Positions 30,076-32,403 of a DNA stretch of 64,000 nt are shown piece by piece. Source of the DNA: Guillardia theta CCMP2712 (taxonomy: Eukaryota > Protista > Cryptophyta). Location: positions 643,033 through 707,032 of the forward strand of contig NW_005434645.1 of NCBI RefSeq assembly GCF_000315625.1, given 5' to 3'. The notes beneath the pieces were generated by a model. It saw nothing but the letters and a program-made list of their open reading frames with translations. It did no database searches and was not told the DNA's origin. The translations under genes were made by a program, and so were the position numbers. How positions within the stretch are numbered: the stretch's first letter is position 1; each line of letters begins with the position of its first letter.

Positions 30076-32403
30076 TCACCCTTCGCTCCTCTCCCCCCAG
30101 CCCCCCTGCACTCTCCCTCCTCTCCTCCTGCCCGGCTTCTTCACGGGTTGGTCCTGCTTCACCAGCTGGGCCTCTGCTTCTTGTTCCTCGCAGAAGCGAG
30201 AGAGGAAGGGAAGATCCTCGCTCGCTCGCTCGCTTCCACCCACCCGTCGAAACCTGCACCCCCTTGCATCCGCCACGTACTCGAGCTGCACTTGATCTAA
30301 CGAGGACGTAGAGGAGGAGGAGGAGGCAGAGCTGACTTCTTCCTTGCCCAAGGGAACAGCATACACAACCCGGAAGGGGTCGTGGAAGCCGCTGCGAGCT
30401 ATGAGATACACGTGGGAGACGAGGAACGAAGACTTCTCCCAGCTCGCCTCTAGCTGGGCTATGGGTGGGCCTTCTAGCGTCTTCCATTGCCCGAGGGAGA
30501 GGTGAGGAACAAACCGCTGGAACCTCGCAATGCTGTCGTCGCAATGCGGGAAGGCCTGCAGGAGGAGGCGGTAGAGTTGCTGTAGCGGAGCATCCTCCTC
30601 CTCTCCCCTCGCCCCCGCCTGCTCCTGCTTCTCAGCTGCACCGTCCTCAGGCTTGAGCCACAGCGTGTGGCTGTACTTGGAGTGCTGAAAGCTGCTCATG
30701 CTGGCAAGGCTCACAGTGAAGGGCTTCATCCTCCGCAGCGCCTGCTCCGCCCTGGCGGCTGCAACAGGAAACTCATGCTCGGGGACGAAGGGGTAGAGAA
30801 CGTTGACGTGCGGGGGCCAGCGGAGGAAGCTCTTGTCGTGAACTGACCGAATCTCCTGCATGCTCGGCCACAAGTCGCCAGGAGGGATCAGGCAGAGAGC
30901 GCTCTGCACGACCTTTGAGGGAGAGGACGAGGACGAGGAGGAAGCTTTCTGCTCCAGAGGAGGTCGAGCTTGTTGATCCCTGCGCGCTCCCTGCTGCCCC
31001 CTCGCGCTTCCCCTGCTGCTGTCTCCCTCCTCCTCCCTTCCTCCAGGTTGCCGACTCTCTTTGCCCTGCTGTGAAGGAGCGCTTGAGATTCCCACCTCCT
31101 CCTCGGGCAGCTCGAGATGTCGCACGACGACATCAAACCTGCTCCTGTCCAGCTTCTCCTGCATGGTGATGGCAAGGGACACAGAGCGATGCTTGCCGCC
31201 ATGGCACCCAAAGAAGATCGCCACCTCCTCCTCCTCTCCCCCTCCCTCCCTCCCTCTCTCGATGAAATCAAGACTCTCCTGCAGCAGCGCCTGAGCTTTC
31301 CCGTCCTCCATTACGAACTCGCGTACGCAGAGCTCGCGTCCCGTCCTCTCTCGCAAGCTTGCTTCATGGTAGGGGTTGCGCTCAATGCTGCGACAGTCAA
31401 GAACCCTGACGGCAGACTCCCCAGCTGCTGCTCCTACTTCTGCTCTGTAGCTCTTGAGGATCTGCTCTTCGTTCCGATTCTTGTAACCGAAGGAAGTAAG
31501 TCGAACTCGACGTCTCCTTCGTGCTCCTGCTCCTGCTCCTGCTCCTGCTCCTGCTCCTGCTCCTGCTCCTGCTCCTGCTCCTGCTCCTGCTCCTGCTCCT
31601 GCTCCTGCTCCTGCTCCTGCTCCTGCTCCTGCTCCTGCTCCTGCTACACCTGCTCCTGCTCCCGCTCCCGCTCCTGCTCCTGCTCCTACTCCCATTGCCC
31701 GAGATGCGTTCCATCGTAGAATCTTGTCTGCAAGGAGGAGAGGGATCTGATCTCTGTTCTGCTCCGTCAGCCGGATCAGCTCGACTCCTCGCATCCTCTT
31801 CGCCTCTTCGATTAATCCTCCTCCCTTCTCGGCGATCGTCGCCACCGCAAACATCTCGTTATGCTGCAGACTCCGCGTCAAGATACGTCGCATCCTGCTG
31901 CTGAAGGTTTCGGATAGGAGCTCCATTCTCCCGATCTCATCCACAAGCACCACGTCTCCTCCTCCTCCTCCTCTCTCATCCACTATGCTCAAACTTGTTC
32001 GCATGCTGTCTTCCATGCCCGGAACGTTGATGGCGTACCTCCCCACAGTCGGCAACTCCCCGGTTTCTTCTTTGTCATTGAGCGTGGCCATGCGCGTCTC
32101 TGCTCCTGATCGCACGTCGAGCAGAGAGAACCCGGAGCGACGTCCTCTCCCGTCCCTCTCCTCCCTCGTGATGAAGCCATGCAGCCCCGCCGCCTCTTCG
32201 CCCTGCCCCCAACCACTGTGCATGCGCAAGCCTGGTGTGAACTTGACATTCCATGGCGGCAGCGGAGGAAGAGGAGGAGCTTGAAGAGAGGATCGGAGAG
32301 GGGGAGGAGGAGGAGGAGGAGGAGACTGCAGCATGGCTAGCAGGCGCAGCATAGCGCTCGTCTTACCGCATGCTGGCGGTCCTGTCAGCAGCACAGCCGG
32401 CAT
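30076..32403 (-). CDS. Fusion of NTPase_1-type P-loop domain, RapZ-C-terminal-like domain and 2H phosphoesterase
   Basis: LLTGPPACGKT, VGRYAI, VLVDEIGRMEL; LTSFGYK, VLDCRSI..NP, GCHGGKHRSV; ALCLIPP, WPPHVNVLYPF, FVPHLSLGQ; one uninterrupted ORF. Confidence 0.85.
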   Translation of the reverse strand: MPAVLLTGPPACGKTSAMLRLLAMLQSPPPPPPPPLRSSLQAPPLPPLPPWNVKFTPGLRMHSGWGQGEEAAGLHGFITREERDGRGRRSGFSLLDVRSGAETRMATLNDKEETGELPTVGRYAINVPGMEDSMRTSLSIVDERGGGGGDVVLVDEIGRMELLSETFSSRMRRILTRSLQHNEMFAVATIAEKGGGLIEEAKRMRGVELIRLTEQNRDQIPLLLADKILRWNASRAMGVGAGAGAGAGAGAGVAGAGAGAGAGAGAGAGAGAGAGAGAGAGAGAGAGAGAGAGARRRRRVRLTSFGYKNRNEEQILKSYRAEVGAAAGESAVRVLDCRSIERNPYHEASLRERTGRELCVREFVMEDGKAQALLQESLDFIERGREGGGEEEEVAIFFGCHGGKHRSVSLAITMQEKLDRSRFDVVVRHLELPEEEVGISSAPSQQGKESRQPGGREEEGDSSRGSARGQQGARRDQQARPPLEQKASSSSSSSPSKVVQSALCLIPPGDLWPSMQEIRSVHDKSFLRWPPHVNVLYPFVPEHEFPVAAARAEQALRRMKPFTVSLASMSSFQHSKYSHTLWLKPEDGAAEKQEQAGARGEEEDAPLQQLYRLLLQAFPHCDDSIARFQRFVPHLSLGQWKTLEGPPIAQLEASWEKSSFLVSHVYLIARSGFHDPFRVVYAVPLGKEEVSSASSSSSTSSLDQVQLEYVADARGCRFRRVGGSERASEDLPFLSRFCEEQEAEAQLVKQDQPVKKPGRRRGGRVQGGWGERSEG
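31522..31692. repeat. (GCTCCT)n hexamer repeat encoding a Gly-Ala linker on the minus strand
   Basis: Direct reading. Confidence 0.9.

Follow-up and report, generated by a model that had tools for sequence, protein, structure and literature searches.

To our knowledge, the NTPase_1 family (NTPCR/THEP1) is conserved from bacteria to human and has no known physiological role, and RapZ's C-terminal domain (RapZ-C) is known solely from a bacterial small RNA (sRNA)/RNase E adaptor. Characterised NTPase_1 members are unspecific nucleoside triphosphate (NTP) hydrolases. In Escherichia coli RapZ, the pocket residues of the C-terminal domain (CTD) are K170, R184, H190, C247, T248, G249, K251, H252 and R253; the C247-S254 loop, with K170 and H190, forms a sulphate/malonate pocket that sits on the GlmZ phosphate backbone and is required for binding, RapZ function is abolished by H190A, G249W, R253A, C247A and C247S, and the authors remark on a possible specialised role of the thiol in catalysis (PMC9841335). 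Here we describe a gene of the cryptophyte Guillardia theta CCMP2712 in which an NTPase_1 domain, a RapZ-C and a 2H phosphoesterase are encoded in one reading frame. It lies at 30076..32403 on the reverse strand (-) of a stretch of 64,000 nucleotides (nt) of contig NW_005434645.1 (positions 643,033 to 707,032); this whole stretch is called the window, and all positions given below refer to it. The three-domain architecture and an intact, presumably catalytic 2H domain are well supported, and we consider them as very probable; a function of the protein on RNA ends is suggested by the relatives of its 2H domain and is given a probability of about one half.

Gene structure and domain content

The open reading frame (ORF) extends from an ATG at 32403-32401 to a stop at 30076-30078 (775 codons), and the ORF listing of the window agrees with the earlier note that it is free of stops. 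The chance of such a run was estimated by ourselves from base composition (~60% GC) at ~e^-25. In the alignments, the start Met and the pattern MPxxLLTG.PG.GKT line up with the N-termini of P0004, P0005, P0006 and P0163, and the start Met together with MPAVLLTGPPACGKT matches the extreme N-termini of the homologues. No start codon was found between modules: the first Met past the (GCAGGA)n repeat that follows the first module falls well within RapZ-C, and the first Met beyond the second linker falls within the 2H domain, so that the modules cannot be independent genes.

The closest relatives retrieved by the HMMER search are P0004 and P0011 of the cryptophyte Hanusia phi, both transcript-derived proteins from EukProt. 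P0004 (72% identity to the window protein) has the same Met, the NTPase, the Pro-rich insert with a similar sequence, and a shorter Gly/Ala-rich linker in the same place, which continues into RVRIASFGYKHRSEEEILK, the start of its RapZ-C; P0011 spans the end of RapZ-C with the second linker and the start of the 2H domain. As P0004 is derived from transcripts, the Pro-rich insert and the first linker are present in mRNA and in frame in this sister genus, and the insert is coding sequence and not an intron. The single transcript over the first linker that the earlier note had called for was thus obtained only from a relative, Hanusia phi; in the genome studied here, the raw RNA gave no reads on the gene. 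The region 30076..32403 (-) is best explained as a real, single-exon cryptophyte gene for one polypeptide. Two candidate introns had been considered and were rejected. The first, of 111 nt and in frame, would lie within the N-terminal insert (GT 32326 to AG 32216), but this segment is retained in the protein derived from Hanusia transcripts; the second, with the donor GCAG/GTGTAG (31650/31649, the slash marking the junction) and the acceptor at 31069, would be non-productive (581 nt, frameshift). In the representative library, 100% identity was reached by one protein alone, P0003, a fragment of the 2H domain of 189 amino acids (aa) from NCBI; this fragment is the only public model found for the locus, and the architecture is therefore hidden in that annotation.

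The N-terminal domain (aa 1-235, 31699..32403 (-)) was assigned to NTPase_1, of the NTPCR/THEP1 type, by Pfam (PF03266, aa 74-221, 2.3e-24, 86.6 bits versus a cut-off of 23.9) and by phmmer, which retrieved human NTPCR (2i3b, 1e-10) and Aquifex THEP1 (1ye8, 7e-9); the alignment to both structures is end to end and matches both Walker motifs. Walker A (GPPACGKT, aa 8-15, 32359-32382) and Walker B (VLVDEIGRME, aa 152-161, of which VDEIGRME, aa 154-161, lies at 31921-31944) are intact. The NCBIfam model PRK13695 scored 88 bits, under its equivalog cut-off of 156, and by this measure the domain is to be placed as a member of the family and not as an equivalog. The Pro-rich insert (~47 aa, aa 27-73, 32185..32325 (-)), which follows the Walker A helix and precedes strand 2, was delimited as a gap versus NTPCR; residues 1 to 28, with Walker A among them, align apart to human NTPCR, and the insert splits off the remainder. 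A P-loop kinase, as inferred in the earlier note, is not supported as it stands: no kinase-family Pfam match was found in the window protein at E<=1, and the P-loop domain is NTPase_1, outside the T4-Pnk/Trl1 kinase family. A second, multi-exon NTPase_1 gene is located on C11 of the same genome. In a Logan contig, P0168 (729 aa) carries an NTPase_1 fused to a DNA photolyase/cryptochrome (PF00875 and PF03441), a further nucleic-acid-repair-type partner for the NTPCR/THEP1 family.

The (GCAGGA)n repeat encodes a (Gly-Ala)n linker (aa 238-295, 31519..31692 (-)) that leads to the RapZ C-terminal domain (aa 299-436, 31096..31509 (-)), identified using Pfam (PF22740, aa 299-432, 2e-19, 70.4 bits versus a cut-off of 27), phmmer, which matches E. 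coli RapZ (5o5s/5o5o), and an AlphaFold2 (AF2) model. Its motifs are SFGYK (aa 304-308), DCR..NPYH (aa 336-346) and GCHGGKHRS (aa 399-407, 31183-31209). The model has a predicted local distance difference test (pLDDT) score of 77.5; Foldseek aligned it to the RapZ-CTD (E 1e-4, template modelling (TM) score 0.70), and VIA-align superposed it on 5o5s with Z 12.7 and a root-mean-square deviation of 3.0 over 116 aligned residues. All other folds gave Z <=7.7 (T4 Pnk 7.7, PFK 6.8, VSP/PTEN-like 6.2 and 5.6, PIR1 5.2), a low range which VIA-align labels a common arrangement, and only RapZ chains were significant in the Foldseek search, the best match of the protein tyrosine phosphatase (PTP) type being Ygr203w (E 0.59). 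The protein is not a full-length RapZ according to NCBIfam PRK05416, which matched over model positions 177-277 only, with 62 bits versus a cut-off of 244.

The C-X5-R-[ST] signature is present as C400-H-G-G-K-H-R406-S407, and GCHGGKHRS equals the C247-S254 loop of E. coli RapZ. The counterparts K308, R338, C400, G402, K404, H405 and R406 of the RapZ pocket are kept; T248 of E. coli corresponds to His401, and H190 to Tyr345, with His346 adjacent. Two stand-alone RapZ-C genes were observed elsewhere in the genome, at G000:C13:523596-523967 (L002 ORF 1282-2136) and G000:C43:272026-272388 (L008 ORF 1297-2178); they score 2e-29 and 2.5e-31 with Pfam, have GCTAG[KR]HRSV loops, lack a P-loop domain and are closer to RapZ than the fused copy. 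E. coli RapZ and the two stand-alone paralogues share the loop, which is thus best read as the family-wide phosphate pocket of RapZ and not as a gain of the window protein. The earlier note had compared it to the catalytic loop of Cys phosphatases and inferred a phosphatase. That interpretation is not supported as it stands: the loop corresponds to the sulphate/phosphate pocket of the RapZ-CTD (C247-R253, PMC9841335), and the Z values of PTP-type folds (5.2-6.2) are at noise level.

The second linker, a low-complexity stretch rich in Ser, Gly, Arg and Glu and devoid of Met (aa 437-498, 30910..31095 (-)), precedes the 2H phosphoesterase domain (aa 499-687, 30343..30909 (-)), which was recognised by Pfam (2_5_RNA_ligase2, PF13563, aa 507-671, 5.2e-30, 104.9 bits versus a cut-off of 27), the AF2 model and Foldseek. 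Motif 1 is RWPPHVNV (aa 528-535, 30799-30822, with H532-V-N) and motif 2 is PHLSLGQ (aa 633-639, 30487-30507, with H634-L-S); H532 and H634 are invariant or nearly so across 57 relatives, in which motif 2 reads H-L-[ST]. The AF2 model has a pLDDT >94 across the domain, and Foldseek gave a probability of 1.0 to YjcG (2d4g), Usb1 (5v1m), 1vdx, a cyclic phosphodiesterase (CPDase, 1jh6) and LigT (5ldm), with TM scores of 0.53-0.67 depending on the target; its matches include archaeal and bacterial LigT/ThpR, the Arabidopsis Appr>p (1'',2''-cyclic phosphate of ADP-ribose) CPDase and a Deinococcus CPDase, at only 13-17% identity. When the 2H domain alone was searched against the PDB, phmmer returned nothing meaningful. 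The three domain assignments and their boundaries, the low-complexity character of both linkers and the position of every quoted motif, including the CX5R loop at 31206-31183, agree with the earlier note, as judged by Pfam, NCBIfam, phmmer, AF2/Foldseek and VIA-align.

Past the 2H domain, alignment with homologues delimits a degenerate WW-like motif, LEYVADARGCRFRRVGGSERASEDLPF (aa 707-733, 30205..30285 (-)), which lines up with DWMYTAKGEAFWRNMSTGSVSNNVP and the like in choanoflagellate and metagenome homologues. It is modelled by AF2 as a beta-hairpin at low pLDDT, and the Pfam scan made no WW call on it. The pattern W-x-Y-T-...-[YF]-W-x-x-x-x-T-G-...-P is conserved at this place in P0006, P0164, P0170 and P0014 and is degenerate in the window protein; it resembles a WW domain without the second Trp.

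Relatives and origin of the fusion

When 1.84 billion representatives were searched exhaustively with HMMER, 3320 hits were returned, almost all of them to the 2H domain. A protein with all three domains would be expected to rank first, but the top hits contained fragments only and no such full-length protein. No usable match was obtained in the cluster Atlas with the full protein, and a word-index search with the whole protein gave one match only, the 2H relative P0001. Queries restricted to RapZ-C retrieved only RapZ-C clusters in the Atlas (one of them eukaryotic, from a basidiomycete, 174 aa), only a bacterial full-length RapZ (L015) in a metagenome scan using RapZ-C patterns, and no match in a word-index search among candidates of 426-1356 aa. 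Literature searches pairing RapZ with 2H and THEP1 with 2H found no paper. The architecture can thus be regarded as undescribed, as had been proposed.

Among the proteins retrieved, the full triple was not found, and two of its pairs were. NTPase_1-2H proteins without RapZ-C are present in the choanoflagellates Stephanoeca diplocostata (P0005), Acanthoeca spectabilis (P0006) and Helgoeca nana (P0170), and in the metagenome clusters P0008 and P0013. RapZ-C-2H proteins (P0010/P0162) are present in one GC-rich metagenomic organism; on its contigs L006/L007, a Met stands right before IRLLSFGYK, stops occur upstream in all frames, and there is no NTPase. In a maximum likelihood tree, a group of six supported at 93/88 unites the 2H domains of all these fused proteins, with a single 2H-only protein (P0014) joining them, which fits a single family with partners gained or lost. 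The core of the window protein belongs to an uncharacterised and small family of eukaryotes, of NTPase_1-2H(-WW-like) composition; in the cryptophyte lineage, RapZ-C sits between the two domains, and the triple fusion seems limited to one cryptophyte lineage. The idea of a convergently assembled enzyme is therefore too simple: the NTPase_1-2H pair forms an older family that is conserved in eukaryotes, and RapZ-C is likewise fused to 2H where the NTPase is absent. What is new is an architecture of known modules in this family.

RNA-end context and proposed function

The partner domains were counted in 43 long relatives of the 2H subfamily of the window protein. EEP was found in 17, PAP_central and MJ1316 in 15 each, PAP_NTPase in 11, and RNA 3'-phosphate cyclase (RtcA) in 1; AIG2_2, a small-molecule-binding domain, was found in 2. 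P0001 combines 2H, EEP, poly(A) polymerase (PAP) and MJ1316, the last of which reportedly recognises RNA 2',3'-cyclic ends and is fused to RNA-repair domains (PMC6514570). Another RNA-linked fusion was found in the same genome (G000:C23, L005:2664-6341 (+)), where a frame of 1225 aa carries a weak PDZ match, a 2H domain of the same subfamily (34% identity to that of the window protein) and a long array of pentatricopeptide repeats (PPR). These fusions with MJ1316, PAP, EEP, RtcA and PPR point to processing of RNA 3' ends bearing a 2',3'-cyclic phosphate. As the most likely mechanism, we propose that the window protein acts on RNA 3' ends: the 2H domain would hydrolyse a 2',3'-cyclic phosphate, or trim or open such an RNA end; RapZ-C would hold the RNA or its terminal phosphate in the anion pocket made of Cys, Gly, Lys, His and Arg, in the way E. 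coli RapZ holds the GlmZ backbone; and NTPase_1 would provide a step that depends on NTP, in which it would transfer a phosphate to a 5'-OH, or else remodel or gate RNA or a ribonucleoprotein. The RNA end-healing role of the earlier note is accordingly kept for the 2H module, to which the partner domains of its closest relatives point, and is not supported as stated for the kinase and Cys-phosphatase parts.

Several observations weigh against this proposal. In its first motif, the 2H domain has H-x-N in place of the classical H-x-T/S, with Asn in at least 90% of the 57 relatives; we take it for a subfamily variant of a domain that is presumably catalytically competent. We know of no established kinase or RNA-dependent activity for NTPase_1. 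Usb1-type and Trl1-CPD-type 2H genes are found elsewhere in the genome (with a PF08302 match at C26), and since these separate genes are present, the window protein is not needed for the canonical Usb1 and Trl1 roles; it is an additional 2H enzyme and not a replacement of Usb1 or of the Trl1 CPD. The RNA support for the gene in this genome is thin and incomplete: the raw RNA run, compared with 29500-31600, had no reads on the gene, its reads being confined to the 3' end of the neighbouring gene (up to ~29996), and 31133-31600 is uncovered by both contig sets considered as RNA-like (X1 and X2). Finally, 2H enzymes also use substrates other than RNA, such as Appr>p, 2',3'-cyclic nucleoside monophosphates (2',3'-cNMP) and 2'-5' oligoadenylate, a point shared with the first of the rival explanations.

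In that explanation, the protein would serve small-molecule phosphoester metabolism or sensing, with RapZ-C as a sensor of sugar phosphates or nucleotide sugars and the NTPase as its partner for the handling of nucleotides. The 2H model does have the Arabidopsis Appr>p CPDase, LigT/ThpR and AKAP18 among its structural neighbours, and NTPase_1 enzymes hydrolyse free NTPs. The RapZ-CTD pocket was proposed to bind glucosamine-6-phosphate (GlcN6P), and density was reported there for GlcN6P in a possibly transformed state (PMC9841335), which also speaks against an RNA-end role. We nevertheless hold this explanation for unlikely, as modules for RNA ends or RNA binding (MJ1316, PAP, RtcA, PPR) recur as fusion partners of the nearest 2H relatives, among which small-molecule-binding partners are rare, AIG2_2 being the one counted above. 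A second rival explanation, along the lines of the earlier note, is a complete, NTP-dependent RNA end-healing machine, in which NTPase_1 would be a new polynucleotide kinase acting on 5'-OH ends, or an activator, 2H the CPDase, and RapZ-C a catalytic module handling phosphoryl groups through its Cys, that is, a Cys-X5-Arg 2'/3'-phosphatase. The C-X5-R-S loop is intact (aa 400-407), the C247S mutant of E. coli RapZ is inactive and its authors raise a possible catalytic thiol (PMC9841335), and the layout of a P-loop domain and a 2H domain parallels the healing modules of Trl1 and CNPase, in which a kinase is paired with a CPDase (PMC5434554). In its fold, the RapZ-C model weakly resembles the kinase domain of T4 Pnk (Z 7.7) and phosphatases similar to PTEN (Z 5.6-6.2), but these values lie in the range of a common arrangement and Foldseek was significant for RapZ chains only. 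With a CX5R loop that is general to RapZ-C, including both stand-alone paralogues of the genome, an N-domain outside the Pnk/Trl1 kinase family and no ligase partner identified, such a machine is judged highly improbable. If true, it would give the orphan NTPCR/THEP1 family its first physiological function and would explain the inactivation of bacterial RapZ by C247S.

A rival explanation of another kind concerns the product itself: the main transcript could lack RapZ-C, with 31069-31689 excised as an exitron to leave an NTPase-2H protein of 568 aa, or the ORF could consist of several genes. Contigs were taken as RNA-like from their uneven depth (X1, X2) or as DNA-like from their even coverage (X10). 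One X1 contig is colinear with the genome across 30139-31070, which leaves no intron in the second linker or the 2H domain, and X2 holds 30263-30967; both sets also hold sequence past 31600, as judged by the share of words, so that they lack 31133-31600 yet have its flanks, and the DNA-like X10 includes 31015-31510. The GT...AG pair 31689...31069 is in frame (621 nt, 207 codons) and would remove the (GA)n linker and RapZ-C; its frame-keeping sites, read by eye, are the donor GGA/GTAGGA (31690/31689) and the acceptor ttcacAG/CAG (31069/31068), and the product would resemble the choanoflagellate proteins. However, the junction 31690/31068 occurs in none of the reads or contigs matched to 29500-31600, the X1 contig merely begins at 31070 without loose letters, at a place where 31069-31070 would be intronic, and a gap in such contig sets proves nothing by this method. 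The RapZ-C segment is moreover a conserved, stop-free, in-frame domain (2e-19), the mRNA-derived P0004 of Hanusia passes directly from the NTPase through the linker to RapZ-C, and separate genes are excluded by the missing start codons. There is thus only a slim chance that the three-domain polypeptide is not the main product. At its other end, the X1 contig departs from the genome at 30139 with 26 loose letters, which occur nowhere in the window; this departure could reflect a difference between strains, splicing at the 3' end or an artefact of the assembly, and touches only the last ~21 codons.

The conserved NTPCR/THEP1-2H fusion, with 2H relatives in RNA-end contexts, is a testable lead to the role of NTPCR/THEP1. 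The eukaryotic RapZ-C, both stand-alone and fused to 2H, suggests a broader role of this domain in the recognition of phosphorylated RNA and bears on the question of the essential Cys in the RapZ pocket.

Neighbouring genes and comparison with described systems

Two neighbours flank the gene. The convergent one (27419-29929 (+)) is a receptor-kinase-like frame of 836 aa, which combines five Cys-rich Ephrin_rec_like/TNFR-like repeats with a probable transmembrane segment and a kinase domain of the PK_Tyr_Ser-Thr family; it is the gene whose 3' end is covered by the raw RNA run. The divergent upstream ORF (32769-33113 (+)) begins with MLQSLYRKILRLHKRVLP, which is LYR-motif-like by eye, and continues as low-complexity sequence; it has no Pfam match at E<=0.001 and probably belongs to a spliced gene as its first exon.

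Compared with human NTPCR and Aquifex THEP1 (2I3B, 1YE8), the N-domain aligns over the full length and has the Walker A and the DEIGxME Walker B in common with them; it differs by the 47-aa Pro-rich insert past helix 1 and by its fused domains, and belongs to a sub-group with the choanoflagellate NTPase-2H proteins. With E. coli RapZ (5O5S, 5O5O, 8B0I), the window protein shares the RapZ-CTD by Pfam, sequence and predicted fold, the K/R/C-x-G-G-K-H-R-S pocket, and the placing of RapZ-C after a P-loop NTPase, whereas its P-loop domain is NTPase_1 and not RapZ-like_N (PF03668), a 2H enzyme is appended, and its host is a eukaryote without the GlmY/GlmZ/RNase E system. The closest 2H domains (35-47% identity) are those of uncharacterised 2H-EEP-poly(A) polymerase-MJ1316 proteins (for example P0001, P0016 and KXS11968.1 of Gonapodya); the signatures IQxIRxxHDKxxxRWxPHxNLLYPF and PHL[ST]xGQ are common to the window 2H and the P0001-type proteins, but the partners are EEP, PAP and MJ1316 in the latter and NTPase_1 and RapZ-C in the former.

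With enzymes of the Trl1/CNPase/Pnkp type, the window protein has in common that a P-loop NTPase precedes a 2H cyclic phosphodiesterase within a single polypeptide, and a putative RNA-end context. Its P-loop domain is NTPase_1 versus a T4-Pnk-like kinase in those enzymes, and its 2H domain is PF13563 versus tRNA_lig_CPD or CNPase; it has no ligase domain, and the genome has its own Trl1-type CPD at C26. The protein is therefore like the Trl1/CNPase modules and like RapZ in layout, and is a member of neither group by P-loop family, 2H family and equivalog scores.

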